64,000 nucleotides of DNA from Macrostomum hystrix (taxonomy: Eukaryota > Animalia > Platyhelminthes), in the NCBI GenBank assembly GCA_950097015.1, contig CATNEN010000029.1, positions 2,976,001 through 3,040,000 of the forward strand. The letters run 5' to 3'. A program made the translations under genes and the position numbers. The notes beneath the pieces are model-generated. The model had not been told where the DNA came from. It ran no database searches and worked only from the letters and a program-made list of their open reading frames with translations. Positions 8,246-38,934 of this stretch are shown here, piece by piece (the first letter of the stretch is position 1; every line of letters begins with the position of its first letter).

Positions 8246-9298
8246 TCTTTAAGCCGAACCATATTTAAATAACAGTTTGAATTTCTAACAGACTCTCTCC
8301 TAGTCTAACGTTCTAATTCGATTGTTAAAATCGAATTTTAACAAGCCGTTACTTTCGTCCTATATCTTTATAAAGATAAAAATGCCGAAAAAATAAGACT
8401 AAGAGGAATGGATTGAGTCCTTTCTGTTGAATAGCAGACTACTGGTAGTTTATTAAATGAAAAAAAATAATTTTAACAGTTTAATTAATTCGATAAACGC
8501 TATCAAATCTTACTGTAGCCTTGGTTATGGTTTGAAAATGGTGACAAATAATATGTTAACAAAAACCGTTTCGAAAAAGGACATTGATCGAGAGCACAAC
8601 AACAATGACATAGGTAAAAATACGTAAATTTTGTAAGGAAATCAAATTATGAAAATTAAAATAATTTCCTATAAAATTAAAATTGAAAAAATATTAATAT
8701 TTCTAAACCCTGGGGGAATATAAGATTTCTAAGAATATAATGCTCGGCAAAAACATCACAAAAGCCTGAGGGGAAATGTTAGTGTTAAATTAATCCTAAA
8801 TAAGCAACAACATATTAAAATACGTATTTGTAATATGTAACATATTCGTAATATGTATCAAAAGCTAATCAAAATTGACTAGATCAATCATAGACGAACA
8901 AATTATGGAAAATCCAAGCGGAAAACATTTATGAATTAATGCCATCGATTTTAAAAAGCTGATAATAGCTCTAAAATATGATTCTTCAGTAAGCCTGTGA
9001 GTTAAGAAAACAAAATAGGTCCAAAAGGAAAATAGTATAAACACAACGGCAAATCTCTTTGTGGACGATGCGAAATGAATATAAAACCAAATTTTTTTGA
9101 TTTGCATAAATGAAGTCGAAATAAGGAAAGAAAGAGATATTTTAGCTCAAATTTACCAGTAACGATATGGCCTTACTGTTGATTGCTATTCTTCTTAAAA
9201 CGAATTCTTTCTCGGTCGAGGTGGCCAAATTTATGCAATATAATTCGCAGGCTGAACAGATGAACCAAGACATCTGGGTCTGGTTAGGGTGAAAACGT

Positions 9299-12040
9299 GA
9301 GACAGGACAGAGATGAGACCAGATACACGAGACAGGGGAGAGATGAGACCAGATACACGAGACAGGGGAGAGATGAGACCAGATACACGAGACAGGGGAG
9401 AGATGAGACCAGATACACGAGACAGGGGAGAGATGAGACCAGATACACGAGACAGGGGAGAGATGAGACCAGATACACGAGACAGGGGAGAGATGAGACC
9501 AGATACACGAGACAGGGGAGAGATGAGACCAGATACACGAGACAGGGGAGAGATGAGACCAGATACACGAGACAGGGGAGAGATGAGACCAGATACACGA
9601 GACAGGGGAGAGATGAGACCAGATACACGAGACAGGGGAAAGATGAGACCAGATACACGAGACAGGGGAGAGATGAGACCAGATACACGAGACAGGGGAG
9701 AGATGAGACCAGATACACGAGACAGGGGAGAGATGAGACCAGATACACGAGACAGGGGAGAGATGAGACCAGATACACGAGACAGGGGAGAGATGAGACC
9801 AGATACACGAGACAGGGGAGAGATGAGACCAGATACACGAGACAGGGGAGAGATGAGACCAGATACACGAGACAGGGGAGAGATGAGACCAGATACACGA
9901 GACAGGGGAAAGATGAGACCAGATACACGAGACAGGGGAGAGATGAGACCAGATACACGAGACAGGGGAGAGATGAGACCAGATACACGAGACAGGGGAG
10001 AGATGAGACCAGATACACGAGACAGGGGAGAGATGAGACCAGATACACGAGACAGGGGAGAGATGAGACCAGATACACGAGACAGGGGAGAGATGAGACC
10101 AGATACACGAGACAGGGGAGAGATGAGACCAGATACACGAGACAGGGGAGAGATGAGACCAGATACATGAGACAGGACAGAGATGAGACCAGATACACGA
10201 GACAGGGGAGAGATGAGACCAGATACACGAGACAGGGGAGAGATGAGACCAGATACACGAGACAGGGGAGAGATGAGACCAGATACACGAGACAGGGGAA
10301 AGATGAGACCAGATACACGAGACAGGGGAGAGATGAGACCAGATACACGAGACAGGGGAGAGATGAGACCAGATACACGAGACAGGGGAGAGATGAGACC
10401 AGATACACGAGACAGGGGAGAGATGAGACCAGATACACGAGACAGGGGAAAGATGAGACCAGATACACGAGACAGGGGAGAGATGAGACCAGATACACGA
10501 GACAGGGGAGAGATGAGACCAGATACACGAGACAGGGGAGAGATGAGACCAGATACATGAGACAGGACAGAGATGAGACCAGATACACGAGACAGGGGAG
10601 AGATGAGACCAGATACACGAGACAGGGGAAAGATGAGACCAGATACACGAGACAGGGGAAAGATGAGACCAGATACACGAGACAGGGGAGAGATGAGACC
10701 AGATACATGAGACAGGACAGAGATGAGACCAGATACACGAGACAGGGGAGAGATGAGACCAGATACACGAGACAGGGGAGAGATGAGACCAGATACACGA
10801 GACAGGGGAGAGATGAGACCAGATACACGAGACAGGGGAGAGATGAGACCAGATACATGAGACAGGGGAGAGATGAGACCAGATACACGAGACAGGGGAG
10901 AGATGAGACCAGATACACGAGACAGGGGAGAGATGAGACCAGATACACGAGACAGGGGAAAGATGAGACCAGATACACGAGACAGGGGAGAGATGAGACC
11001 AGATACACGAGACAGGGGAGAGATGAGACCAGATACACGAGACAGGGGAGAGATGAGACCAGATACACGAGACAGGGGAGAGATGAGACCAGATACACGA
11101 GACAGGGGAGAGATGAGACCAGATACACGAGACAGGGGAGAGATGAGACCAGATACACGAGACAGGGGAGAGATGAGACCAGATACATGAGACAGGACAG
11201 AGATGAGACCAGATACACGAGACAGGGGAGAGATGAGACCAGATACACGAGACAGGGGAGAGATGAGACCAGATACACGAGACAGGGGAAAGATGAGACC
11301 AGATACACGAGACAGGGGAGAGATGAGACCAGATACACGAGACAGGGGAGAGATGAGACCAGATACACGAGACAGGGGAGAGATGAGACCAGATACACGA
11401 GACAGGGGAGAGATGAGACCAGATACACGAGACAGGGGAGAGATGAGACCAGATACACGAGACAGGGGAGAGATGAGACCAGATACACGAGACAGGGGAG
11501 AGATGAGACCAGATACACGAGACAGGGGAGAGATGAGACCAGATACACGAGACAGGGGAGAGATGAGACCAGATACACGAGACAGGGGAAAGATGAGACC
11601 AGATACACGAGACAGGGGAGAGATGAGACCAGATACATGAGACAGGACAGAGATGAGACCAGATACACGAGACAGGGGAAAGATGAGACCAGATACACGA
11701 GACAGGGGAGAGATGAGACCAGATACACGAGACAGGGGAGAGATGAGACCAGATACACGAGACAGGGGAGAGATGAGACCAGATACATGAGACAGGACAG
11801 AGATGAGACCAGATACACGAGACAGGGGAAAGATGAGACCAGATACGTGAGACAGAGGAGAGTTGAGACAATGAGAGATGAGACAGGAGAGAGATGAGAC
11901 AGGAGAGAGATGAGACAGGAGAGAGATGAGACAGGAGAGAGATAAGACAGGGGAGAGATGAGACAGGGGAGAGATGAGAAGGAGGAGAGATGAGACAAAG
12001 AGAGATTAGAAAGGGGAGAGATGAGACAGGGGACAGATGA
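9299..12040. repeat. 30-bp minisatellite (GAGACAGGGGAGAGATGAGACCAGATACAC) with a degenerate 15-bp tail
   Basis: About 85 highly homogeneous copies to ~11850, then GAGACAGGAGAGAT-type 15-mers. Confidence 0.97.
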
Positions 12041-19850: not shown

Positions 19851-22068
19851 GGTGTAAATTCTATCTATCATAGTGGCTTAGAAGAACAAATGCCTGAATA
19901 TATTATACATCATGAAAAAACACCCACAGAGAAATAGTGCAAGTTGTTTTTATTTACAAATACTTTAAAGAATAACATATAATATAAAAAGAATAAATGA
20001 CATACAAAATATTTAGACAACAAATATATATTAAGAGACTGTCTAAGACATAACATGCACACACATAACTATTTTTCTACTATAAACATTGATTAAAAGC
20101 ATGCTAGCAACACTTACTATTGATAACAGCCCTAACATATTTTTACAGGCACGTTGTATTAGTGCTTTAAGTTTTCAATTACTTTAATTTTTAATAGAAT
20201 GACTTCTCAATAAAAATTATTTAGGACTATAAGAATAAACATCAAAAATATACTAGAGATTTCTATAAGTTAAGGGGATATATGGTACTTACCAAGAAAC
20301 TACTCAGAATATGTAACTCCTATGCCTTTAAAATGATTTTGGTACACATTAACTTTGTTAAGTGCCTGATTTCTTGTTAGTTCTAAACATGTTAAAAATT
20401 ATTTAAGTTGCATAACTTTTATTTCTGTGCTTCAACTTTTCATTTTGTGGAAAATATTTTGGATAAGGTGCATGTAACCTTGTAGAATGGGTTGTAGAAT
20501 GATGGCATCTTTTCTTATATATCTACCTCACTTTTCTATTTTTTTCTATTCTTCTTTTTAGCTAAAGTGAAAGATACATAGAGAAGAAAGCTGGTATGAA
20601 AGAAAAAGATAATAAGATAATACATTATAGGTTGGTACAAAGTTGAACCTAAGTGCCAGTCATTTTGGTGACAGAGATTTTGATGACAAAACTTTATGGA
20701 ATATCTAAAAACCTATAGAACCAATAGACATGTGCTTAAAAATCAAGTGCAACTCATTTACTACACCTTAGCATGTGATATGATGAAATATTCCGAATAA
20801 ACATGTAATTATATTCTTAAATCCAGGAGGTAATTTTTATTTTCTGAACCACAATAAATTTTTCTGTAGCAATAGACAGAAATGGAGTACATAATATATG
20901 TAACAATGCTTATTAAATTTATGTTGTAGGAGTGACAAATAGCCATATAAAAGACAAATATATCTCAGGTATTGAAAAAGCATGATAATTGTAAATAGCA
21001 GTTGGGTCAGTTAGATTTTTATACATAAGTAGCTGGTTCCTTTTACAGAATGACTATGCAGCAAGGTTTCAAATAATGTTATATAGACCAGATTTATTTG
21101 CTTACTGATGCCCTGTCTAGTACATTGTATTCAACAATCCATAACACCACCACAAAAGAATCAGTGATTGAATTGTGTGGTTGCATGGTTGTAAGTCAAG
21201 TTCTATGGCTTAGTAACAAGTCACTGTTGAGAGACAAGATAGAAATCATTTTGGTGACATAAAAGTTGTTTGTTTTAGAAACAATAGGCCCCTAGTATTA
21301 AATTGACAACATTAAAATTTATTGAAGAGTAGATTTTATAAAAACAGACTGTAACTCTTTATATTTATAGAGTGGACTAGATGATTGATGATTCTGTATT
21401 ATAACAATTAGCAATCTTCTAGTTTTGCACGTTTAATTCAAACTGTTTAAAAAACGACAGTTAATGACAGTTTTGTATAACAACCAAGAAACAATGTGAC
21501 TAACAACCAATGAAAGATGACTGACAGTGTCTATGAGTCAATTGCATGTTACTCAGATGTCATAGGCCTAGTAGTATGCTCAGACGGCATAGGCCTAATA
21601 GTGTGCCACCCAGAAAAGGATGTTCCCAAAGGTGTTGTGCAAGTGTGCGCACTATTATGCCATCAGTAGAGTTTATGCCATCAGTTGAATTTAATGCCTT
21701 ACAATTATATTAATATTACTATAGTACAATGCACTACCATTTTGATGAAAAGGGGATAAGAAAGACTAAAAAATAACCAATGACATTTAAAATTAATAGC
21801 AACAAAAGTGCTAAATTATATATTAGTATGACATAGTATAAGTAAGCTACAAAAGCTCTATTGGTATATATTATATATTTTTACTTAGCTAGTTTCCAAG
21901 CATAATTGTTTTTGGATCAGTGAAAACAATTCTTGCTGCTTCATTCTAGGCTAGCTTAATTTTCCAAAACAGGGGCAGCCAGTGTTTAAAGAATGGTTTT
22001 TTATTAACGACTCGTTTTAGGTAACGAACATAATAATTCTAAAACATTCTAGGAAATTTGCGTGCCGT

Positions 22069-24520
22069 CACCCGTATATACACTTTTGACCGTATATACC
22101 ATGCAAAAACGGGCCAGTTTTGGCTAACATATCATGATATATGATATCGTAGCACGGTATCATAATGTAAAATGCATATCTCTTCCGCGCGATTTCAAAT
22201 GTCTTTCGGTTTACTGTACACAGCTCAGTATTTCTTTGGTTAGCTATGTAATTTTACTGAAATTTACTGTGCTAGCTCTAGGCTCTACTACTTTTCTCCA
22301 TTTTCACAGTGTATTTAGTTTTTTTCACTTTTAGCATGGAGATTCGCATACTTGGCCTAGTCTTATAGTAATAGCTACTATAATTAATATTATCATATAT
22401 AATTGACCTGTCTAATCATTGTGGTCTATTGAGCTAGGCTAATATTTTTTCTTACTATTATCTGTATGGTAGCAGGTAGCTAGGCTATTGCTATCTGAGC
22501 GAACAGGAAATATATTAGTATATGTAGTAGGCCTAATATATAACATATATATTATCTATGCTATATGGTACCAGTTATATAGCAAGCAAAGCAAGCAAAA
22601 AATGGTAGCTTTTAGATGCTGAAATGGTATAAACAGTATAATTCATACTGACTTTCGAATGGCTAATTGCCTAATACTATATGAATTGCTTGATATTTAT
22701 ATCTTTTTTCATTGACACTACTCTAGACCTAATACAAATTTGCTATTAGTTTCAGTATAAATATGAGTATAAATTTGTATTGTTGGTTTAAATATGATCT
22801 TTTTAATATAGGTTGTATACCTACAACATACCTACTGCTAGGGGTTGTAGCCTAGTGGTTAGAGCATTGGACTCATGACTTAAAGGTTAAGGGTTTGATT
22901 TGAGGGTTTACTAGCATTACCTAGGGTAATTGATTATGGGTATGGTGGCCTCCTAGTTCATGGACTGAACAGCCATATGTAGCCTTGATGTCCCTCTGAA
23001 CAACAGCTATCCTACTTTACTGCTATCCTATCCTCTCTGTTGGCCCTTCTTGCTGTCCTACATTCCCTGCTGCCCTATCCTCCCTACTGTCCTACCCTCC
23101 TTACTGCCCCACCCTCCCTGCTGCCCCACTCTCCCTCCCTACTGTCCCGCATTTCCTACTGGCCCTCCCTGCTTCACTACCCCTCCTTGCCCTACCCTCC
23201 CTGCTGTCCTGCCCTCCCTGCTAGCTCTACCTGCTGTCCTACCCTCCCTGCTGTCCCACCCTCCCTGCTGTGCTGCCCTCCCTGCTAGCCCTACCTGCTG
23301 TCCCACCCTCCCTGCTGTCCCACCCTCCCTGCTGTCCCACCCTCCCTGCTGTGCTGCCCTCCCTGCTAGCCCTACCTGCTGTCCCACCCTCCCTGTTGTC
23401 CCACCCTCCCTGCTGTCCCACCCTCCCTGCTGTGCTGCCCTCCCTGCTAGCCTTACCTGCTGTCCTACCCTCCCTGCTGTCCCACCCTCCCTGCTGTGCT
23501 GCCCTCCCTGCTGTCCCACCCTCCCTGCTGTGCTGCCCTCCCTGCTAGCCCTACCTGCTGTCCCACCCTCCCTGTTGTCCCACCCTCCCTGCTGTCCCAC
23601 CCTCCCTGCTGTCCCACCCTCCCTGCTGTCCCACCCGCCCTGCTGTGCTGCCCTCCCTGCTAGCCCTACCTGCTGTCCCAACCTCCCTGCTGTCCCACCC
23701 TCCCTGCTGTCCCACCCTCCCTGCTGTGCTGCCCTCCCTGCTAGCCCTACCTGCTGTCCCACCGTCCCTGCCGTCCCACCCTCCCTGCTGTCCCACCCTC
23801 CCTGCTGTCACACCCTCCCTCCCTGCTGTTCTGCCCTCCCTGCTAGCCCTAGTACCTGCTGTCCTGCCCTCCCTGCTAGCCCTACCTGCTGTCCAGCTCT
23901 CCCTGCTGTCCCACCCTCCCTCCCTGCTGTTCTGCCCTCCCTGCTAGCCCTCCCTGCTGTCCTGCCCTCCCTGCTAGCCCTACCTGCTGTCCAGCCCTCC
24001 CTGCTGTCCCAACCTCCCTCCCTGCTGTCCCACCCTCTCAGCTATCCAGCTATCTCTCCCTCCCTGCTGCCCCACCCTCCCTGCTGTCCCACCCTCCCTC
24101 CCTGCTGTCTCACCCTCCCTGTTGTCCCACCCTCCCTGCTGTGCTGCCCTCCCTGCTAGCCCTACCTGCTGTCCCACCCTCCCTGCTGCCCCACCCTCCC
24201 TGTTGTCCCACCCTCCCTGCTGTGCTGCCCTCCCTGCTAGCCCTACCTGCTGTCCCACCCTCCCTGTTGTCCCACCCTCCCTGCTGTGCTGCCCTCCCTG
24301 CTAGCCCTACCTGCTGTCCCACCCTCCCTGCTGTCCCACGCTCCCTGCTGTCCCACCCTCCCTGCTGTCCCACCCTACCTGCTGTCCCACCCTCCCTGCT
24401 GTGCTGCCCTCCCTGCTAGCCCTACCTGCTGTCCCACCCTCCCTGTTGTCCCACCCTCCCTGCTGTGCTGCCCTCCCTGCTAGCCCTACCTGCTGTCCCA
24501 CCCTCCCTGCTGCCCCACCC
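22069..24520 (+). repeat. Left TIR: ~1 kb unique segment plus ~1.4 kb C-rich modular minisatellite
   Basis: 22069-~23230 is the reverse complement of ~37430-38598. I found two internal substitutions, two 1-bp homopolymer indels and one mismatch at terminal position 3. The array of CCCTCCCTGCTGTCCCA-type units runs to ~24520. Confidence 0.93.
22841..23005 (+). mobile_element. Decayed family-B SINE embedded in the left TIR (mirror copy at ~37660-37824, -)
   Basis: GGGGTTGTAGCCTAGTGGTTAGAGCATTGGACTCATGAC head and CATGGACTGAACAGCCATATGTAGCC body match the 15370-15660 SINE. Confidence 0.75.
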
Positions 24521-24650
24521 TCCATGCTGGCCCAACCCTTCATTTTGTTGATACCCACCGTTTTTTGTTCTTCCCACCCTTCTGGCTCCGTCCCTCTACT
24601 GCTTTTTATTCTCTGAGATTTCATGTTTTTGCTCCACACTTTTCAGCACT

Positions 24651-27600
24651 ATGGGGAGGCGGAAGTTATCTGTTGCTAAGTCATCAATATCATATTACCG
24701 TAAAAGTCACAAGAGGCCTCGAGTTTTGCGAACCACAGTAACGACGCAGTGCAATAATATGTGAGTTTGCTCTGTTTAGAACCTTAGTTTTTCTACTATT
24801 TTTAGAGTAATATTTTTTCCTTTCAGGGACGAAATCCATATTGATGATAACCGTGAGGCTGTTTATGTGCCTGAGGAAGAATGGAAAGATGTACCTGAAG
24901 GCAGGGATCATCTTGATCCATACGATTGTACAGTGCCCTCAAGAAGCCGCACGAAAAAGTCACCCAGTCGTTTCAAGCAGTTTTGCGACGATGAATCCGC
25001 TGCTTGGAATGACTTGTTTGAGTCTGGAGCTCTTCTCAACGATTTTGCCACCTACTTCAATAGGCACCCATGTGTTATCTGTGGTGTCTCGTCCGACAAC
25101 ATATTCCGCTGTACAAAATGCCACCTGCTGTCAGTGTGCACTGCCTGTCTAGAAGTAAAGCATGCACACAACCCACCTCATGTTGTACAACACTGGAATG
25201 TAAGGAAAGCCTTTTTGTTCATAATTCTTCAGATTTCAAGAAGTGCATACAATATTTTTCCTCTTCTGAATGTATCTCATTCTACAAGGGCAAATTCTTT
25301 GAAGCTGTCGAATCGAATGCTCGACTGGCTCGAATGTGTGCTTGTAATTCAGCAATTGCTGGCGTATTTCCTGTTACTGTCATCACAGACAATGGTAAAA
25401 TTATTTAGACATTGTTAAATTTGTTTATTTCTGTGTTAATTAATTTTAATATAATTGATTGATGGCAAAAGCTCGCATGTTCTTAACCCATATTCTAGAT
25501 GCAAGTGAGATGCAAGTTGATTTAGAAGTTTGCTCCTGTGCAACTTACCATTCTGCTCTTCTGGTACATGGCTTCTGGCCTTTGCAAGCAAGACCAGAAT
25601 GTTCTAAAATGTTAACTGCTATTGCAGTGGAACTTCTACTACTGCTTGATTCGCTTAATTGCAACTGCACTGCATCCTTATCATCTCTCTGTTGGGCTCT
25701 TAAGTGTTATCGTGAGTCAATTTGGACGCATAAATACCCATCCGTAAGTTTTACAGGCACCATAGCCCCTGACTAACAAGTTATTCTATTTTATCTACGT
25801 ATTTCAGTGTATTCCTTACTTCCTGTAACACTTTGCAGCTCGATCTATTTCGAGCGCTAAATTTGGCTGGCGCGTTTAAATCGTTTCGACGTGTACTTCA
25901 AAGCTTTCGATGGGGAGAAAAAACAACATGTCCCGCTTGTTATTTGGTAATTTTATTTAAATTCATTTACAAATTACTCCGTTTTCTATTACCTTTCCAA
26001 TCCCACTATTTTACAATTACCATGACTTGTATGAAATCTCACAGGTCAACGCGAATGCCTCTAGTGAAGAGCCAGTTTTTTTAATGATGGACGGCTGTTT
26101 TGGTCTTCGCCATCGAAAATCTGCTGGAAATGCCGCTCCACCACCTCCCTCTGGCTTTTTTCTTGACGTTGACCTCACTGAGAAATGTCCACCCTCGACA
26201 GGACACTGTGCAAACTGGAATGCAGGTGGAAGAGGTCGAAGTCTAGCGACTTCTTCAGATAGTGCTAAGCTAGATGTCTTTGGTGCATTCTCTGGTTCCT
26301 GCAGACATTCTGCAATAACTTATTTGGCCGATATGACATCGACTGGCGAACGGTAAATTGTTTTTGGAAGCATAAAATTACCGTTTTTAATGACCTCACT
26401 ATTTCGTGTTTTTTCAATTTTTATTTCTTCTTAGACTTAACTATTCCACGACTATGATTGCTCAAATGATTCGGGATGTTCCGCCAATGGTGCCAATCGT
26501 CGTCTCCTACGACATCGGGTGCAAGCTAACCGGTCGCTTTAACGACTCAAGGCTGTCTTTTGCCATTCCGGCTTTTCATTCCTATGGGCATGTTCTACGC
26601 TGTCAACTTTCCCATGGTATACGCTCTGTTCAGTCAGTCGGCCTGACAGATGGCGAGAGCGTAGAGCGCGTCTGGGCAACGCTTCGACGATTCGGCCCTC
26701 AGCTGAAAGAGATGGCTCACGATAACCGTCGGGAATTTTTGAACTATCTAGCGAATACTATCAACTTCCAGTGTATCACAAAGATCAGTAAGTATTAGTT
26801 CTATACATAGTGAAGCAGAAATTGCGTAAAATAGTGGAAACCCAACAAAAGACTGCGGCATATAAGCAGACAAAAAACCCATAGTTTAACCGATACAATG
26901 CGCTAAAATTAAAATCTTACTTTAGCTACCTGGCTTATCGGCCGAAAAGCAGTGGAGAGAAAGGCAATCCAGCAGTTCCAAGCTGAGCTTTCGGCTTTTC
27001 TACTCCAGAACAATTCTTCGAGTAAGTTGTTGCCGTTGCATTTTAAATTGGAGTTTAAATGAATTTTGTGTCGGTAGTTTATGGACGAGGGTGTGGATAC
27101 CATTTAAGGAATTATCTTTTTACCTCATTAACTGACCTCTATAGTGAGCCTGGACGATTTTCTTAACGCTGCGGCCGGTTGGAGGCAGGAGCTTCTCGAT
27201 ATACTAACTGCACATTCCAAAGCATCTTCACCCAAATCTAAAGCCATTCAAAAGCTCTATGGAATTGCCTGCGAGCGCCGGTATTTGATTGAACATGTCG
27301 GGACAGAACGTGGACAGCGCATGCAAAAGCTTCTTCGAGTTTCTCTTAACAAACTGCTTTCCAAATCAAAAGCGATCTGCTCGAGTTTTAACAGTGCTCA
27401 TCCTACAGACCAACTAGATCAGAGCCACTTCATTAAGCCTGAAGCACCCGGCTTCGAGGAACTTGTGAGCATCAGAAACCAAGCTCAAAAGGTACATGCT
27501 GTGAAGCTTCGAGACCTGTACCTTCGTATCCAGGAGGAGTCGCGTCTGGTAGCTGCGGAAGCAGAGAGGACTTCGCTATTTCTCACTGAAGCGGCTCGCA

Positions 27601-28001
27601 AAGCACGTATGGAAGTACAAGCAGCTCGAGAAGGTCCATTGGCTGCCGCACTGTCTATGAGAGAAAATGGCATTCTTCAGATACTCCAAGCTCACTTAGC
27701 AGCCTTCCCGTCAGAAAGTCAAGCAGTTCAATCTACTTCGAGCAGCATTTCCTGCCTGGAGACAGCACGGGGTAAAGCGCATAAAGCATGATCACATTTT
27801 CATACTGACATTTCATATTTGCAAATGTTGTGTGGCGTAATGGTTAAATAATTAATTTCTGATGCTTGTACCCTGGATTTTTTAGCGTCCAGTGCTTCTG
27901 GGGACGAATCCTCGAGTTCACAATCTTCATCGCCGGAAAGTGATTTCAAGAGCGAATTTGAATGCACATCCGAGAGCGAATCCGAGTATGAATCAGACTA
28001 A
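24651..28001 (+). CDS. KDZ transposase with N-terminal CxC (CxC2/3-like) cysteine cluster; 10 exons, 813 aa, apparently intact
   Basis: Exons 24651-24760, 24827-25199, 25289-25394, 25499-25743, 25839-25946, 26045-26352, 26435-26787, 26926-27021, 27145-27771, 27886-28001. All introns are GT-AG with consistent phases. Motifs: CVIC..RCTKC..CTAC..H..PH..W, CPAC, MMDGCF, SCRH..DM..GE, SYDIGC, FHSYGH..CQ, G.TDGESVER.W (D-D-E triad intact). Acidic tail. AATAAA at 28069. Confidence 0.9.
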
Positions 28002-29019
28002 TCTAGGACACAGCGACTGAGCTAGTTTTCTATTTAGCTTCGAGTAACATTGCTCACTTATTTATTTTAATAAAGCTAATTTAACCATTGCAATTTTCTA
28101 ATTTGTAAAAAATGCATATAAAAAATGTGTTCCCATGTATGCTGTGAACCTGGGACATGGGACACTCACTGCTTTACGTTTAAAAGTTGAACTTCCTATT
28201 GTCTTGCTTTGTAATGTTTGACGCAACTATTGTCGAAAAATGTCGAAATCAGGTAGTATTTAGCACGGTTGTATATTACATTTTTAAGCGCAATCTCTAT
28301 CTTCTTTGAAAGCAGGGGCCAAATTTATAACTAGCAGACCACTAGCATTTCCTATGCCTATGGATTAAAAGTATTTTACAGTATTGCTTTTCCTTAAAAT
28401 ACTCGTACTGGTAATGCTAAATAGTTACTGCAACTGCAACTGCTACAGCTCGTAATGCAAATTTTCATAAATATTCTTGTGTGTTATTTAATATGCTCTT
28501 CCTATGTAAGTTTGCATAAAAATAGAACGAAAAATATCGAAAACAATTATTTCTCTTATGAGTACGAACGAATGCAGGAAATGTTACAGTTGCATGATAA
28601 ATGTAGCCACTTTCATTCTTTTTAAATAGTATTATATTTTTTGCAAGAACAGCGAAACTACCCTAGAGGCAAACCCTAGGAGTGTCTGTACAATTGTGGT
28701 TTAGCCCAGCTTCCATGTGCCCTGAAAAGCTGCTTCTAAGGGCTAATTGGTAATTGAAAGCAGAAGTCCGAATTATGCCGAATCCGAAATATTTTACTTC
28801 TTTCTTACAGTTTTGAAACTATTTTTACCGCATAGATAACAGCGCCATAACTTTAAGGACTACCATGGTACATATGCATGCTAACATCTGCCGCCATGCT
28901 GTTTCGCCGTTAGTTGTAAATAGCTGAACGCCATGCTATATAGAATAGCAGGGTTCTGATAGGAACATTTTACGCCATGTTGTTTCTAATTACAGCGCCA
29001 AGCTGTTTCTAATAAAGTG

Positions 29020-29950
29020 CGCCATGCTGTTTCTGATAACAGCGCCATGCTCTAAGGAACCATGGTACATATGCATACCAACACTCGTCGCCATGCTGTT
29101 TCTGATTACAGCGCCATGCTCTAAGGAACCATGGTACATATGCATACCAACACTCGTCGCCATGCTGTTTCTGATAACAGCGCCATGCTCTAAGGAACCA
29201 TGGTACACATGCATACCAACACTCGTCGCCATGCTGTTTCTGATAACAGCGCCATGCTCTAAGGAACCATGGTACATATGCATACCAACACTCGTCGCCA
29301 TGCTGTTTCTGATAACAGCGCCATGCTCTAAGGAACCATGGTACATATGCATACCAACACTCATCGCCATGCTGTTTCTGAATACAGCGCCATGCTCTAA
29401 GGAACCATGGTACATATGCATACCAACACTCGTCGCCATGCTGTTTCTGATTACAGCGCCATGCTCTAAGGAACCATGGTACATATGCATACCAACACTC
29501 GTCGCCATGCTGTTTCTGATAACAGCGCCATGCTCTAAGGAACCATGGTACATATGCATACCAACACTCGTCGCCATGCTGTTTCTGATAACAGCGCCAT
29601 GCTCTAAGGAACCATGGTACACATGCATACCAACACTCGTCGCCATGCTGTTTCTGATAACAGCGCCATGCTCTAAGGAACCATGGTACATATGCATACC
29701 AACACTCGTCGCCATGCTGTTTCTGATAACAGCGCCATGCTCTAAGGAACCATGGTACATATGCATACCAACACTCGTCGCCATGCTGTTTCTGATAACA
29801 GCGCCATGCTCTAAGGAACCATGGTACATATGCATACCAACACTCGTCGCCATGCTGTTTCTGATAACAGCGCCATGCTCTAAGGAACCATGGTACATAT
29901 GCATACCAACACTCGTCGCCATGCTGTTTCTGATTACAGCGCCATGCTGT
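29020..29950. repeat. 69-bp satellite inside the transposon
   Basis: About 13.5 copies of GCCATGCTGTTTCTGATAACAGCGCCATGCTCTAAGGAACCATGGTACATATGCATACCAACACTCGTC, with a partial degenerate copy at ~28845-28910. Confidence 0.95.
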
Positions 29951-30019
29951 ATAGAAAAGCATGGCGCTAGCTATCGTAAAGTTAAAGTAAAGGAAAGCAA
30001 AACTACTGTCCTACTGGTT

Positions 30020-30150
30020 AATGCTACCCTCTCAACTACCCCAGCTAATGCTGGCACATTTAACAGTTGGGTGAACTGATGAAAAACAGTTAAGCGTCTT
30101 GCCAATGGACACACATTTTTCTAGTGGAATTGATATTCGAACTCTGAGCA
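30020..30150 (-). mobile_element. SINE family B fragment nested in the KDZ element
   Basis: CAACTACCCCAGCTAATGCTGGCACATTTAACAGTTGGGTGAACTGA matches the other family B copies. Confidence 0.6.
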
Positions 30151-32870
30151 TGAGTAAAAAAGCCTTTTATTTAATCAAAATCTCTGTAAGCGAACCTGGA
30201 ATAGGATCGGAAAGCTGGCTCTAAATTACAGAATATAGCGTTGCTTTGGACAGAGCGACATCTATGCAAAAGCAGTTAATCAACATCATAGGATTTCTTG
30301 AATTCAACAGCCAGGTGAAATTTTCAGATAAGCTGTGACGAACCGTACAATGTTACGAGTCTGCCGCCGACAACCGTAAGTGTCTCGTATTTATCCTACT
30401 ATATTAATCCTAAAAGTACTGGGAAACATAGGCATTACGTACTGTTTGAGTAATTTACGGGACTTAGCCTGTAAGTAATTTTTAAACTTTAATTGTTTAA
30501 GGGGTGCTACGTACTGCTGGAGACTGCTGTCTTATATGTCACAGAAGACAGCGAGAGACAGCGAGTTCAGGCAGGAAACTTTAGAGTGATTGTGCTAAAG
30601 CATATTGGAATATGCCGCCGCCCCAGTCCATACATGTACAATTGGCTCGTACCAAACCAACCTCGCAATTGAACTTTAAGTCAAAGCGGGCTCTCGAGAC
30701 CATGCAGCCAGCGTCTTAGCTGTCAACTTCAACTCACGACCATTCAAGTCTCAACTCAAAGGATTCTGCTGGTGGGATATTAGATCTAGGGATTAGATAG
30801 GTGTATTGGACTTTTGATGTTGGGTTCTTGCATCGGAGACTGATTTAAATAGACTTAGTAAGTCAAGTAGATTTATGCAACTTCTACTATATACATGTAC
30901 CCCTGTATATTGTGATACCCCTGATCGAATTAGCTGAGAATGTCACACTTGTAATGGTTTTCGAGCCTAACGAGATTTTATTAGTTTTTAATTCTCTTAA
31001 GGGCAGCGTGCGGTTAGGTTGTCGTCTACGGGAAAATAATGCACTGAATTCAACTTGGATTACGTAAATTTCCAGTCAATTGTAATGAGCCGATATTCTC
31101 GTCTCTTTTGTGCGAATAGCGCGCGCTTTATTATTTACATCGCTTACATTTGAAATGCAATGTATATATGTATACATTGCATACATATGCATTCTGTATA
31201 TCCAGAATGCTCAATCGAGCATATTATTTATTTTCGAAGCATAGCGCCCATAGCGCCATAGCGCCAAATCATGTGTTATAGCAATGTTGTCTTCATTGCT
31301 TTTATGTTGTTGTACTAGGTTATGTTACTACAATGTTGACTCCATGTTGCAATGGCAATATATATATTTCTTACCGCATCAAGCTTATCATCCTACTGAT
31401 AGCAGATCAGATGGAATTCTAAGTTTGACTATGTCGATAAAAATATTGATGAAAGTGTGTGTGCTATATAATTATATAATATAATATAATATTCTAAAAA
31501 GTTAAGGATGTGGTATGCTAAATTAGTCAAGATCCATCAAAATTAAGGGGCATCCCGAAATTACTTTTGTCAGTGGTACCCCCATCAAAAAGACTATAGT
31601 CACGCCAGGCAGGGGTGTACCGACTTTGAGCGGACCCCATTTGAGAACCGCTTTATCTAGAGAGATGAGATTTGATGGATTTTGATGGGATTTCATGTCC
31701 CGTACTCTGGGATAGAAGTAGAAGAGATCCCCGTCGAAAACCGGAGTCTAAAAGACAGCCTGCGGCGTCAGAATGTCACCCAGTGTAAATTGTATCTCCC
31801 CTGTGTATTTCGTCAAATTTTCTAGGTGACTTTCCAGGTTAATAAGTTCGAGGAGAAATCATTTGTAATCATGAAACTAACTCAGTCGTGTAGGAAATTG
31901 TTTCTAGATTGATTTCCAATCGAATCCGACTCGATAAACTGTGCTCAAATATTTTGGGACACCGACGACAGCCATATACTACTGACAGTAGTCAAAGTCG
32001 ATAAAATTACAAAAAATTAGTAAGAAAATTGTCATAACTTTTTTCTTCAAAAGATATTGAGCTCGGACCGCCTAGAATGAATTTCCCGTCCGAAAATAGT
32101 TTAGAAAACACAGTACCTAATAGTATGGAAGCAGTAGCTAGCAATCGGCTAGCTATTGCGTGGCTCATCTAAGTCTACGTACGGCTGTTTCATCCATGGA
32201 AAGTGTTTTAGCCTTGCTAAAGGGCAAAAATAGTTCTAAGAGATTATGAAGACAGAATCATCGCTGAAGACAGCGCCAGCCTTAAAGACAGCGCCAGCCC
32301 TGAAGACAGCGCCTTCCTCGAAGACAGTGCATGCATCGAAATCCAATGTACCTTTTAATTTCAAAAAAGAGAATAAGCAAATAACAAGACAAGCAGCACT
32401 ATACCACTGAAAATGAATAACAAGTAACAAATGGGACGAAGAAAACAGTAACAAAAATTGTTCATAAAATAAAAAAATGTCATCATTTTTTCTCTTTAAA
32501 CAGTGATATGGAAAACACGTGTATTGCACCATTTAACTGGATGGTTGTATCATACTTGCAACAAAACACAAAAAATAGAAATGCAATCAGACGCTTCGTA
32601 TTAACTCTTGTACAAACTGGCGTATTATTAGCGGGGTGCTATCACAAGCTCGAAATTTCACAACACCGAAAAGTATTTTTTCATTAGGTCGAAACTTTAG
32701 TTTTTAGTTTTTAGGCCTAAATCAGGGGTCGGCAAACTTATATGGCTCGAGGGTCACAGAGAGAGTACAAGAGACGACAGCGGGCCGTGCTGATAGAGGT
32801 GACTTCATATAGAGGTGACTACTTTCAAAGATCACTTCATTATCACTTCATCTTAATATTTATCGCGGCT

Positions 32871-34232
32871 TCAATGAAGACGTACAGGAGTATAAGAAAC
32901 GGCAACCTTCCGGCAGACATTGACGCCAGCCGACCCGCCAGCACCAGTCGATGACGCAGAAATTCTGACGCTGTTAGCCGACACCGTACTACTGGACTGG
33001 TCAACAATGATCGGTGGTAGGTCGGCAAAAGTTTTTTTTTCAAAGAAAATAGACTCCTTTTTTGACCATATAGCGGCTAAGTCCTTTTTGCACAGCCGCT
33101 GCGGGTGACAGTCTTGCCGAACACCGGTTGGCCAATTAATCCACCGACCAAAGCGGGTGTGATTGGAGTACTGGAGCTGTCGGTTTTTAATAACCTTCGC
33201 TGCAAGGAAAAAGTAAAAACGCGAGTATGATTCAAGAAGCAGTGCTGGCCGGTATGGTACCTGCTCATGAATTCAAGACAATGCTTTTGACGAACTAACA
33301 GAAAAATACGAGTACTTACAAAATTTTTTTTGCAAAAGCTCGCTAACCGCGACACGAAGACCAGCAGCGGTAGTGAGGCCACCACTATCAGTATTTGCCA
33401 AAGCAGATTGAAGAGCCTAAAAATAAGATTCCCAGGGCTACAACGGTGTGGCCACATTCAATAACATACTCGTAGAATTGCGCCAGATCCAAAACAACAT
33501 AATAATACTCTTTCCTAAATCCACAAAAAATTTTATACTATCTTACCAAAGCAATATTTCGCTTTTCGCAAAACCCTGTCACGTCTTCCGACTCGAAGAC
33601 GCTGGTTACTCCGCCGCTTTTTGGATGAAGCAGTACGATGGCATGTAAACCAGCTGAGTCAGCAGAATCAATCTGAAATTCCATATACCCTCGTTGAGTT
33701 ACATTGACTTAAGGAGAGTAAGTAACATCCGAAGCCTACTTAAAAACGTTTGAATAAAACGGCTAAATATTCCTGAATAAGTCAATTGCATTTTTTCTTA
33801 CTTACAAGCTTACTAGCAGCCTTTCGAAGCTTCCGTTTGGTTACATCTATGCTACTTTTCCGTTGATCAGCAGCATTTCTCAACAAAATACGCTCCGCGT
33901 CTCCTAAGTTTGCGTACGATGCTCGCAAACTTTCCATCTGGTCTGAAAGGCGGAAAACGGATTAGTTTGAATTTTGACACCGAGCTAAATAGCAGTAAAA
34001 AGAGAAAGTGATCGAAAGAAGCTCATACAATTTAGCTACCTAAAGACAAGAAAATTGTCATGGTTACAATGTCAGGCGAATCCTCGAGTCAAGACGATAA
34101 AGATATAACAACAGCGTGAAGAAGATTGATTAAAAACTACTCATTTCTACTACTACTCCATACGAAGCATCACTCACGAGTAATACTAACACCCGGAGTG
34201 CAGTTTCGGCGGCAATGCTCCTTCCAAGACAT
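32871..34232 (-). CDS. Transposon partner protein, 5 exons, 247 aa; HMG-box-like N-terminus and a C-terminal WP-GV..P motif
   Basis: Exons 34232-34178, 33942-33806, 33672-33547, 33416-33320, 33199-32871. All have GT-AG sites (gtgagt, gtaagt, gtaaga, gtaagt), matching phases and no internal stop. The protein begins MSWKEHCRRNCTPGVSITHQMESLRASYANLGDAERILLRNAADQRK and contains WINWPTGVRQDCHPQRLCKKDLAAIW. Confidence 0.82.
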
Positions 34233-34359
34233 TCTGAAAGCACAAAAACGTTGAAAAATATAAAATAACAGAACATCTAACCACAAAAGAAGAAAATGCA
34301 CCCAACAGTATAAGAAAGGAAGGACCTAAAGGTAGGGAGGGTGGAGGGGGGAAAATAGA

Positions 34360-37300
34360 GGTGGGACAACAGGGAGGGTGGAACAGCAGGTAGGGCTAGC
34401 AGGGAGGGCAGCACAGCAGGGCGGGTGGGACAGCAGGGAGGGTGGGACAGCAGGTAGGGCTAGCAGGGAGGGCAGCACAGCAGGGCGGGTGGGACAGCAG
34501 GGAGGGTGAGGCAGCAGGTAGGGCTAGCAGGGAGGGCAGCACAGCAGGGAGGGTGGGACAGCAGGGAGGGTGGGACAGCAAGGAGGGTGGGACAGCAGGT
34601 AGGGCTAGCAGGGAGGGCAGCACAGCAGGGAGGGTGGGACAGCAGGTAGGGTGGGACAGCAGGGAGGGTGGGACAGCAGGTAGGGTGGGACAGCAGGGAG
34701 GGTGGGACAGCAGGGAGGGTGGGACAGCAGGGAGGGTGGGACAGCAGGGAGGGTGAGACAGCAGGGAGGGTGGGACAGCAGGGAGGGTGGGACAGCAGGG
34801 AGGGTGGGACAGCAGGGAGGGTGGGACAGCAGGGAGGGTGGGACAGCAGGGAGGGTGGGACAGCAGGTAGGGCTAGCAGGGAGGGCAGCACAGCAGGGCG
34901 GGTGGGACAGCAGGGAGGGTGGGGCAGCAGGTAGGGCTAGCAGGGAGGGTGGGACAGCAGGGAGGGTGGGACAGCAGGGAGGGTGGGACAGCAGGTAGGG
35001 CTAGCAGGGAGGGCAGCACAGCAGGGAGGGTGGGACAGCAGGGAGGGTGGGACAGCAGGGAGGGTGGGACAGCAGGGAGGGCAGCACAGCAGGGAGGGTG
35101 GGACAGCAGGGAGGGTGGGACAGCAGGTAGGGCTAGCAGGGAGGGCAGCACAGCAGGGAGGGTGGGACAGCAGGGAGGGTAGGACAGCAGGTAGGGCTAG
35201 CAGGGAGGGCAGCACAGCAGGGAGGGTGGGACAGCAGGTAGGGTGGGACAGCAGGGAGGGTGGGACAGCAGGGAGCGTGGGACAGCAGGGAGGGTGGGAC
35301 AGCAGGGAGGGTGAGACAGCAGGGAGGGTGGGACAGCAGGGAGGGTGGGACAGCAGGGAGGGTGGGACAGCAGGGAGGGTGGGACAGCAGGGAGGGTGAG
35401 ACAGCAGGGAGGGTGGGACAGCAGGGAGGGTGGGACAGCAGGGAGGGTGGGACAGCAGGGAGGGTGGGACAGCAGGTAGGGCTAGCAGGGAGGGCAGCAC
35501 AGCAGGGAGGGTGGGACAGCAGGGAGGGTAGGACAGCAGGGAGGGTGGGACAGCAGGGAGGGTGGGACAGCAGGGAGGGTAGGACAGCAGGTAGGGCTAG
35601 CAGGGAGGGCAGCACAGCAGGGAGGGTGGGACAGCAGGTAGGGTGGGACAGCAGGGAGGGTGGGACAGCAGGGAGCGTGGGACAGCAGGGAGGGTAGGAC
35701 AGCAGGTAGGGCTAGCAGGGAGGGCAGCACAGCAGGGAGGGTGGGACAGCAGGGAGGGTAGGACAGCAGGGAGGGTGGGACAGCAGGGAGGGTGGGACAG
35801 CAGGGAGGGTAGGACAGCAGGTAGGGCTAGCAGGGAGGGCAGCACAGCAGGGAGGGTGGGACAGCAGGTAGGGTGGGACAGCAGGGAGGGTGGGACAGCA
35901 GGGAGCGTGGGACAGCAGGGAGGGTGGGACAGCAGGGAGGGTGAGACAGCAGGGAGGGTGGGACAGCAGGGAGGGCAGCACAGCAGGGAGGGTGGGACAG
36001 CAGGGAGGGTGGGACAGCAGGGAGGGTGGGACAACAGGGAGGGTGGGACAGCAGGGAGGGTAGGACAGCAGGTAGAGCTAGCAGGGAGGGCAGCACAGCA
36101 GGGAGAGTGGGACAGCAGGGAGGGTGGGACAGCAGGGAGGGTGAGACAGCAGGGAGGGTGGGACAGCAGGGAGGGTGGGACAGCAGGGAGGGTGGGACAG
36201 CAGGGAGGGTGGGACAGCAGGGAGGGTGGGACAGCAGGGAGGGTGGGACAGCAGGTAGGGCTAGCAGGGAGGGCAGCACAGCAGGGCGGGTGGGACAGCA
36301 GGTAGGGTGGGACAGCAGGGAGGTTGGGACAGCAGGGAGGGTTGGACAGCAGGGAGGGTGGGACAACAGGGAGGGTGGGACAGCAGGGAGGGTAGGACAG
36401 CAGGTAGAGCTAGCAGGGAGGGCAGCACAGCAGGGAGAGTGGGACAGCAGGGAGGGTGGGACAGCAGGGAGGGTGAGACAGCAGGGAGGGTGGGACAGCA
36501 GGGAGGGTGGGACAGCAGGGAGGGTGGGACAGCAGGGAGGGTGGGACAGCAGGGAGGGTGGGACAGCAGGGAGGGTGGGACAGCAGGTAGGGCTAGCAGG
36601 GAGGGCAGCACAGCAGGGCGGGTGGGACAGCAGGTAGGGTGGGACAGCAGGGAGGTTGGGACAGCAGGGAGGGTGGGACAGCAGGGAGGGTGGGACAGCA
36701 GGGAGGGTGAGACAGCAGGGAGGGTGGGACAGCAGGGAGGGTGGGACAGCAGGGAGGGTGGGACAGCAGGGAGGGTGGGACAGCAGGGAGGGTGGGACAG
36801 CAGGGAGGGCTAGCAGGGAGGGCAGCACAGCAGGGAGGGTGGGACAGCAGGGAGGGTGGGACAGCAGGGTGGGACAGCAGGGAGGGCAGCACAGCAGGGA
36901 GGGTGGGACAGCAGGGAGGGTGGGACAGCAGGGAGGGTGGGACAACAGGGAGGGTGGGACAGCAGGTAGGGCTAGCAGGGAGGGCAGCACAGCAGGGATG
37001 ATGGGACAGCAGGGAGGGTGGGACAGCAGGGAGGGTGGGACAGCAGGTAGGGCTAGCAGGGAGGGCAGCACAGCAGGGAGGGTGGGACAGCAGGGAGGGT
37101 AGGACAGCAGGGAGGGTGGGACAGCAGGGAGGGTAGGACAGCAGGTAGAGCTAGCAGGGAGGGCAGCACAGCAGGGAGGGTGGGACAGCAGGGAGGGTAG
37201 GACAGCAGGTAGAGCTAGCAGGGAGGGCAGCACAGCAGGGAGGGTGGGACAGCAGGGAGGGTGGGACAGCAGGGAGGGTGGGACAACAGGGAGGGTGGGA

Positions 37301-38598
37301 CAGCAGGGAGGGTAGGACAGCAGGTAGAGCTAGCAGGGAGGGCAGCACAGCAGGGAGGGTGGGACAGCAGGTAGGGCTAGCAGGGAGGGCAGCACAGCAG
37401 GGAGGGTGGGACAGCAGGGAGGGTAGGACAGCAGGTAGAGCTAGCAGGGAGGGCAGGACAGCAGGGAGGGTAGGGCAAGGAGGGGTAGTGAAGCAGGGAG
37501 GGCCAGTAGGAAATGCGGGACAGTAGGGAGGGAGAGTGGGGCAGCAGGGAGGGTGGGGCAGTAAGGAGGGTAGGACAGTAGGGAGGATAGGGCAGCAGGG
37601 AATGTAGGACAGCAAGAAGGGCCAACAGAGAGGATAGGATAGCAGTAAAGTAGGATAGCTGTTGTTCAGAGGGACATCAAGGCTACATATGGCTGTTCAG
37701 TCCATGAACTAGGAGGCCACCATACCCATAATCAATTACCCTAGGTAATGCTAGTAAACCCTCAAATCAAACCCTTAACCTTTAAGTCATGAGTCCAATG
37801 CTCTAACCACTAGGCTACAACCCCTAGCAGTAGGTATGTTGTAGGTATACAACCTATATTAAAAAGATCATATTTAAACCAACAATACAAATTTATACTC
37901 ATATTTATACTGAAACTAATAGCAAATTTGTATTAGGTCTAGAGTAGTGTCAATGAAAAAAAGATATAAATATCAAGCAATTCATATAGTATTAGGCAAT
38001 TAGCCATTCGAAAGTCAGTATGAATTATACTGTTTATACCATTTCAGCATCTAAAAGCTACCATTTTTTGCTTGCTTTGCTTGCTATATAACTGGTACCA
38101 TATAGCATAGATAATATATATGTTATATATTAGGCCTACTACATATACTAATATATTTCCTGTTCGCTCAGATAGCAATAGCCTAGCTACCTGCTACCAT
38201 ACAGATAATAGTAAGAAAAAAATATTAGCCTAGCTCAATAGACCACAATGATTAGACAGGTCAATTATATATGATAATATTAATTATAGTAGCTATTACT
38301 ATAAGACTAGGCCAAGTATGCGAATCTCCATGCTAAAAGTGAAAAACACTAAATACACTGTGAAAATGGAGAAAAGTAGTAGAGCCTAGAGCTAGCACAG
38401 TAAATTTCAGTAAAATTACATAGCTAACCAAAGAAATACCGAGCTGTGTACAGTAAACCGAAAGACATTTGAAATCGCGCGGAAGAGATATGCATTTTAC
38501 ATTATGATACCGTGCTACGATATCATATATCATGATATGTTAGCCAAAACTGGCCCGTTTTTGCATGGTATATACGGTCAAAAGTGTATATACGGCTG
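34360..38598 (-). repeat. Right TIR: ~3.1 kb G-rich modular minisatellite plus ~1 kb unique segment
   Basis: GGGAGGGTGGGACAGCA-type units, the reverse complement of the left array. The outer ~1.1 kb mirrors 22069-~23230. Confidence 0.93.
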
Positions 38599-38934
38599 GT
38601 GCCGTAGTGTGCCAGTGTCTGGGCCCATGCCATGAGCGGCTCTTTTAAAAGTTATCATAACGACATTCTACCTAAAATAAATAGCACAGCCTTATAGCTA
38701 TAAAGAATCAGATAAGTTTAACTGTGTTTGAGAATGCATATATATATATTTGTTAGGACTATCTTTTGTATTTGTTGAGTTTGCTTTTCTATTTAAATGG
38801 CGCAGGTTTGACTTCGTCGTTACATTCTGTTTATTGTATTCAGAAATTATCTTTCATTGTGTTTTGATTGTATTTTTGGCTCCTTTGCATTATAATACGG
38901 ACTGTTAAGCACACCATAATACAAATTTCTAATT

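Follow-up and report, generated by a model that had tools for sequence, protein, structure and literature searches.

The partner gene and its reading frame

We analyzed a stretch of 64,000 nucleotides from the flatworm Macrostomum hystrix (contig CATNEN010000029.1, positions 2,976,001 to 3,040,000), hereafter the window; all coordinates given below are positions within it. The window contains a complete transposon (22069-38598) that encloses two genes, a transposase gene of the KDZ type and, on the minus strand, a gene of five exons that we call the partner gene. The partner gene is real and transcribed: its five joined exons form an open frame of 744 nt (247 codons and a stop codon), and all of its exon joints occur in contigs assembled from two public sequencing runs. 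An earlier note, made from the letters of the window alone, had described it as the partner gene of a KDZ transposon. This description is borne out by the inverted arms of the element, its target-site duplication (TSD), the PF18758 match of the transposase and the spliced transcripts.

The four introns of the partner gene begin, in order, with GTGAGT, GTAAGT, GTAAGA and GTAAGT (GT[A/G]AG) and end with TTTCAG, TTTCAG, TTTTAG and TTGCAG, each acceptor being preceded by a pyrimidine-rich tract. These sites fit the splice motifs of Macrostomum lignano, in which the donor is GT[G/A]AG and the acceptor CAG (PMC8629364). The exon coordinates and junctions that the earlier note had proposed proved exact, and the four GT-AG introns with the open frame of 247 amino acids (aa) were reproduced. 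The exons have a guanine-plus-cytosine content of 0.48, compared with 0.33-0.41 for the introns. The frame had been thought unlikely to arise by chance, and it was open in 0 of 5000 shuffles of the partner-gene coding sequence. The two peptide strings quoted for the protein, one at the N-terminus and the other containing WINWPTGV, are both present in the translation. The gene is absent from the list of open reading frames (ORFs) of the window, as the earlier note had pointed out, because the in-frame ORFs within its exons that start with ATG, GTG or TTG are all too short.

Spliced transcripts in two public runs

For evidence of transcription we used two public runs of one study (X1 and X2), which have about 45 million letters each and contain a third of the words of the window. 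Their Logan contigs were aligned to positions 32300-34350 of the window. Contigs of the two runs carry all four joints (33199/33320, 33415-6/33546-7, 33672/33806 and 33942/34178), which are those at which junction reads had been predicted (34178/33942, 33806/33672, 33547/33416 and 33320/33199). The segments that the contigs skip are bounded by CT..AC on the plus strand, that is by GT..AG on the strand of the gene. Most contig pieces are at least 99% identical to the window. They cover the exons at a depth of about 4-5 but leave the introns, the region upstream of 34300 and most of the region beyond 32728 on the downstream side at zero. The 3' end of the partner transcript is at 32728-32731, and its 5' end extends to 34286 or further (Table 1). 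We read X1 and X2 as RNA because DNA runs this small could not reach such a depth over the genome of a flatworm, and their introns would be covered too. The contigs are thus best read as mRNA, and the sole formal alternative for their origin is a DNA retrocopy.

Comparison of the RNA contigs with the window shows three differing sites in the coding sequence, each of which changes the amino acid (V86E, N232T and C234G). The RNA contigs therefore derive from another copy or allele of the gene. Downstream of the gene, one X2 contig of 201 nt with a depth of 28.6 matches just the 50 bases at 32632-32681 and is unlike the sequence on either side; this segment is probably a short repeat common to another transcript.

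For annotation, the case of the partner gene implies that a multi-exon transposon gene can be real even if it has neither a long ORF nor a relative in the databases.

Table 1. Positions of the partner gene, the transposase gene and the ends of the element in the window.
Feature	Position	Strand	Remarks
Partner gene, exon 1 (coding part)	34178-34232	-	start codon 34232-34230; 18 codons + 1 nt; donor GTGAGT; RNA joint 33942/34178 in X1 and X2
Partner gene, exon 2	33806-33942	-	codons 19-64; carries the HMG-like string and the KRKLRK basic cluster; frame and RNA joints
Partner gene, exon 3	33547-33672	-	codons 65-106; frame and RNA joints
Partner gene, exon 4	33320-33416	-	codons 107-138; frame and RNA joints
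Partner gene, exon 5	32871-33199	-	codons 139-247 + stop; region of the WINWPTGV motif, then Ser/Gly/Ala-rich tail
Partner gene, 3' untranslated region	32728-32870	-	X1 and X2 RNA contigs both stop at 32728-32731
Partner gene, 5' leader in RNA	34233-34286	-	X1 contig extends to 34286; X2 contig begins exactly at 34233
KDZ transposase gene	24651-27791	+	intron-bearing; PF18758; first coding exon after a TTTCAG acceptor
Left inverted arm	22069-24540		outer part 22069-23333; inverted 17-bp minisatellite 23051-24539
Right inverted arm	34360-38598		inner 17-bp minisatellite 34360-37614; outer part 37332-38598
Target-site duplication GTGCCGT (7 bp)	22062-22068 and 38599-38605		perfect
Two direct copies of CCGTATATAC	38568-38595	-	right-hand tip of the element; mirror copies at 22072-22099

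The KDZ element around the two genes

The partner gene lies inside the inverted ends and the TSD, alongside the KDZ transposase gene, and is the second gene of the element. The outer parts of the two arms (1.26 kb) are 99-100% complementary to each other, and the ends of the element read CA..TG. Within the KDZ group, a 7-bp target duplication together with CA..TG ends is found in Kyakuja, while Zisupton and Dileera duplicate 8 bp (PMC12730594). The element is a complete and recently inserted KDZ cut-and-paste transposon with Kyakuja-type features. Two matches to PF18758, at 1.4e-23 and 4.8e-08, lie in its transposase gene, which also has a weak match to CxC1 that stays below the cut-off; the 215-aa ORF at the C-terminus of the transposase is 51% identical to a KDZ protein of Macrostomum lignano (UniRef). 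The two genes are convergent: the transposase gene runs inward from the left arm and the partner gene inward from the right arm, with its start 128 bp from that arm.

Between their outer parts and the genes, the arms are filled with a 17-bp minisatellite, in about 90 copies in the left arm versus about 198 in the right arm and in opposite orientation. The arrays have changed in length despite the outer arms being about 100% identical. The direct pairs of CCGTATATAC stand at the extreme ends: a search of the 64-kb window returned four matches, all of them terminal, where 0.04 would be expected by chance. These terminal pairs are candidate binding sites for the transposase or for the partner protein.

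Other repeats were recorded in and around the element. A 69-bp tandem array of 13.5 copies, 98% alike, lies between the two genes (29020-29948); several of its frames are open, and the long ORFs within it are consequently repeat artefacts. In the window as a whole, Tandem Repeats Finder gave 27 rows, with periods of 14-69 bp plus larger multiples, and minisatellites yield most of the long ORFs on the ORF list (for instance 9142-11998). A stretch of the outer arm that resembled a tRNA by eye (37760-37830, minus strand) was negative with ARAGORN and Rfam.

A common layout at the start of both genes

Just inside the minisatellite, both genes have the same layout at their start (34233-34240 for the partner gene, 24640-24653 for the transposase gene), with a pyrimidine tract, the hexamer TTTCAG and then the start codon. 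The gap between TTTCAG and the start codon is 1 nt in the partner gene and 4 nt in the transposase gene. About 30% of the genes of Macrostomum lignano are trans-spliced, and the acceptor motif of the spliced leader is [T/C]TNCAG (PMC8629364). The TTTCAG upstream of both starts fits this motif.

The RNA contigs bear on whether this upstream acceptor is used in the partner gene. Its AG is at 34235-34234, and the first base of the X2 contig (34233) directly follows it; the X1 contig reads past the acceptor to 34286. A graph assembler breaks a contig where two different upstream sequences meet. As the X2 contig breaks exactly at 34233, we infer that the acceptor at 34235-34234 is active and that it joins the gene to a spliced leader or to a leader exon located in the arm. 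The common layout suggests that spliced-leader trans-splicing, or a leader exon shared through the arms, applies to both genes. With either source of the leader, the reading frame of the partner gene most likely starts at the ATG at 34232-34230.

Features of the partner protein and searches for relatives

The predicted protein of 247 residues has an isoelectric point (pI) of 9.96. It carries a basic cluster of the nuclear-localisation kind, KRKLRK, at residues 54-59, and from about residue 200 it ends in a low-complexity tail rich in Ser, Gly and Ala. We detected no internal repeat when comparing the N-terminal with the C-terminal half (z = 1.1), and no second copy of the gene within the window.

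The domain and homology searches and the structure prediction used single exons as queries. Pfam gave no family for any of exons 2-5 at a cut-off as lenient as E<=10. Among the 177,635 sequences of the PDB (E<=10), exon 3 had no match, exon 2 matched designed ankyrin repeats at a non-significant E of 0.45-2, and exon 5 gave a low-complexity match and Cdc13, also not significant (E>0.01). None of these three exons matched an HMG, MADS or GTF2I chain.

Exon 5 was compared by phmmer with 1.84 billion representative proteins, and both hits that it returned were spurious, leaving no true relative. The first was a Sushi-repeat protein (1.1e-09), in which the match is limited to a string of 14-17 residues around WINWPTGVRQDC / WINWPTGV. 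We consider this hit spurious because its score is the sum over seven repeats, each of which contributes only this short motif. The WINWPTGVRQDC region does resemble the end of a Sushi/CCP repeat and the linker that follows it. However, such a repeat has about 60 residues and four conserved cysteines, whereas in the partner protein Gly replaces Cys and the other cysteines and the remainder of the repeat are absent; exon 5 has no Sushi match in Pfam (E<=10). The second hit, a bacterial protein with Ig-like repeats, aligned to the Ser/Thr-rich tail of exon 5. A word-indexed search of exon 5 against 5.8 billion proteins (E<=10) gave one candidate and none that scored, and a feature search of the ESM Atlas with exon 3 and with residues 1-66 of exon 5 gave no usable hit. 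By the sequence searches made with its exons singly, the partner protein is an orphan.

A protein without relatives in the databases searched and without a known Pfam domain may be a passenger, that is, a captured fragment of a host gene or a young lineage-specific gene that is transcribed but has no part in transposition. A low-complexity C-terminal quarter and three copy differences that are all non-synonymous would be consistent with such an origin, and KDZ elements elsewhere carry varied cargo. However, in this young element the frame runs unbroken through all five exons, expression of the gene comes with correct splicing, and its position and start layout mirror those of the transposase gene. 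We therefore consider a passenger unlikely, although it deserves more weight than the other alternatives weighed below.

Resemblances to known DNA-binding domains

The earlier note had seen an HMG box in the N-terminus of the partner protein. In this reading, a divergent HMG box would bend DNA at the long arms or select targets, and the gene would be the animal counterpart of an accessory gene of fungal KDZ elements. The protein is basic, as expected of an HMG-box protein (PF00505), and by eye the spacing of W, RR, P, L, Y, L, AER, L and A in residues 3-47 is helix-like and can overlie HMG helices 1-3. An HMG box is an L-shaped fold of about 75 residues, with three helices and an N-terminal strand. 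However, exon 2 (45 aa), which holds most of the quoted N-terminal string, matched neither the Pfam HMG_box, nor any other Pfam family, nor an HMG chain in the PDB at E<=10. Compared with the box by eye, the protein would have its first residue about 12 positions inside it and would lack the N-terminal strand. Because the ATG directly follows the acceptor, the box would have to be a truncated one that lacks its N-terminal third.

The premise of an HMG companion in fungal KDZ elements found no support in the literature either. The companion genes named in a 2025 KDZ survey are TET/JBP dioxygenases, and the word "HMG" is absent from that survey (PMC12730594). In the one paper found that joins KDZ, HMG and transposon, HMG appears just in an unrelated reference. 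The sequence comparisons thus do not support an HMG-box identity for the partner protein, and we regard the whole proposal as very unlikely.

Two further families can be matched by eye to other parts of the protein. Residues ~52-115 recall a MADS (SRF-type) domain, a candidate that we rejected: neither exon 2 nor exon 3 matches a Pfam family (E<=10), and exon 3 has no match in the PDB (E<=10) or the Atlas. Residues ~126-194, the part of the protein that looks most conserved, seem by eye closer to a TFII-I-type repeat. They show, in succession, an LR..V.EL helix, an aromatic residue after a short strand, a P.G turn, L..I and I.F..KK, which we take to be the order of elements in a GTF2I repeat. 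For this repeat (TFII-I, PF02946), a fold of four helices and two strands, a query with exon 5 gave no match in Pfam or the PDB at E<=10; the putative first helix lies on exon 4. Since patterns seen by eye fit three families (HMG, MADS and TFII-I), such resemblances are worth little without a test. That the core at ~126-194 is a GTF2I DNA-binding repeat, encoded by an obligate second gene of an animal family of Kyakuja-type KDZ elements, is improbable in our estimate. The TFII-I repeat is otherwise known from animal transcription factors. If the proposal were true, it would place this repeat in a mobile element and give KDZ elements a Harbinger-like transposition system of two proteins.

A possible role in transposition

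Accessory genes have been described in KDZ elements (PMC12730594), and we propose that the partner gene may be one of them. In this view the partner protein would be an accessory factor that the element itself supplies: small, basic, nuclear and DNA-binding. Its targets might be sites repeated in the arms (the CCGTATATAC pairs at the termini, or else the 17-bp arrays), and it might help the transposase to find or to pair the ends of the element.

This proposal draws on an intact and expressed frame in a young, TSD-bounded element, on the pI of 9.96 together with the basic cluster, on the start layout common to both genes, and on 10-mers that occur at the ends only. The Myb-like protein of Harbinger and TnpA of En/Spm are small DNA-binding proteins that recognise terminal or subterminal repeats and assist the transposase. 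A role in DNA binding or end recognition is plausible for the partner protein, and we give an accessory DNA-binding factor that acts on the terminal 10-mers or on the 17-bp arrays roughly one chance in three.

Several points weigh against this role. No DNA-binding domain was detected in the Pfam and PDB searches with single exons, and no homologue of the partner protein was found in the protein databases searched with exon 5. A model of exon 5 alone, predicted by AlphaFold2 (AF2) without an alignment, shows no secondary structure and has a mean predicted local distance difference test score (pLDDT) of 30.6, too low for the model to be used. Three non-synonymous differences out of three hint at weak constraint on the coding sequence, with the three sites being too few to count. 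Finally, the kind of X1 and X2 (RNA or DNA) is not on record, and their use as transcript evidence depends on the pattern of coverage described above.

The partner protein may instead be a regulator that inhibits transposition or counters silencing by the host, along the lines suggested for TET/JBP genes in the KDZ elements of fungi. The KDZ accessory genes described so far are related to chromatin or to DNA modification, which would fit a regulator. However, the partner protein is small, Pfam revealed no enzymatic domain or motif in it, and nothing ties it to chromatin. We hold a regulator to be less likely than a passenger, and keep the accessory DNA-binding factor as our preferred, still tentative, reading.

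Comparison with known two-gene elements

Fungal Kyakuja elements with a TET/JBP companion are the closest described systems with which the element can be compared (PMC12730594). They share with it a KDZ transposase, a target duplication of 7 bp, CA..TG termini and a second gene inside the element. The host, in contrast, is an animal here, a flatworm. The Kyakuja families of Laccaria have no terminal inverted repeats (PMC12730594), whereas the inverted arms here measure several kilobases and are packed with minisatellite. The companion gene differs as well: it encodes a dioxygenase in fungal Kyakuja (PMC12730594) and a small orphan protein here.

The proposed mechanism takes its model from elsewhere, from the Myb-like ORF1 protein of PIF/Harbinger and from TnpA of En/Spm (CACTA). 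These also belong to cut-and-paste elements with two genes. No sequence or domain similarity between them and the partner protein was found, so that any analogy with them would be one of function.

KDZ transposons, their accessory genes included, are best described in fungi and algae. Young and complete animal copies in which both genes are intact and expressed, such as the one in Macrostomum hystrix, are useful material. They would show how giant KDZ elements move, and whether these elements, like Harbinger and En/Spm, depend on a second protein.
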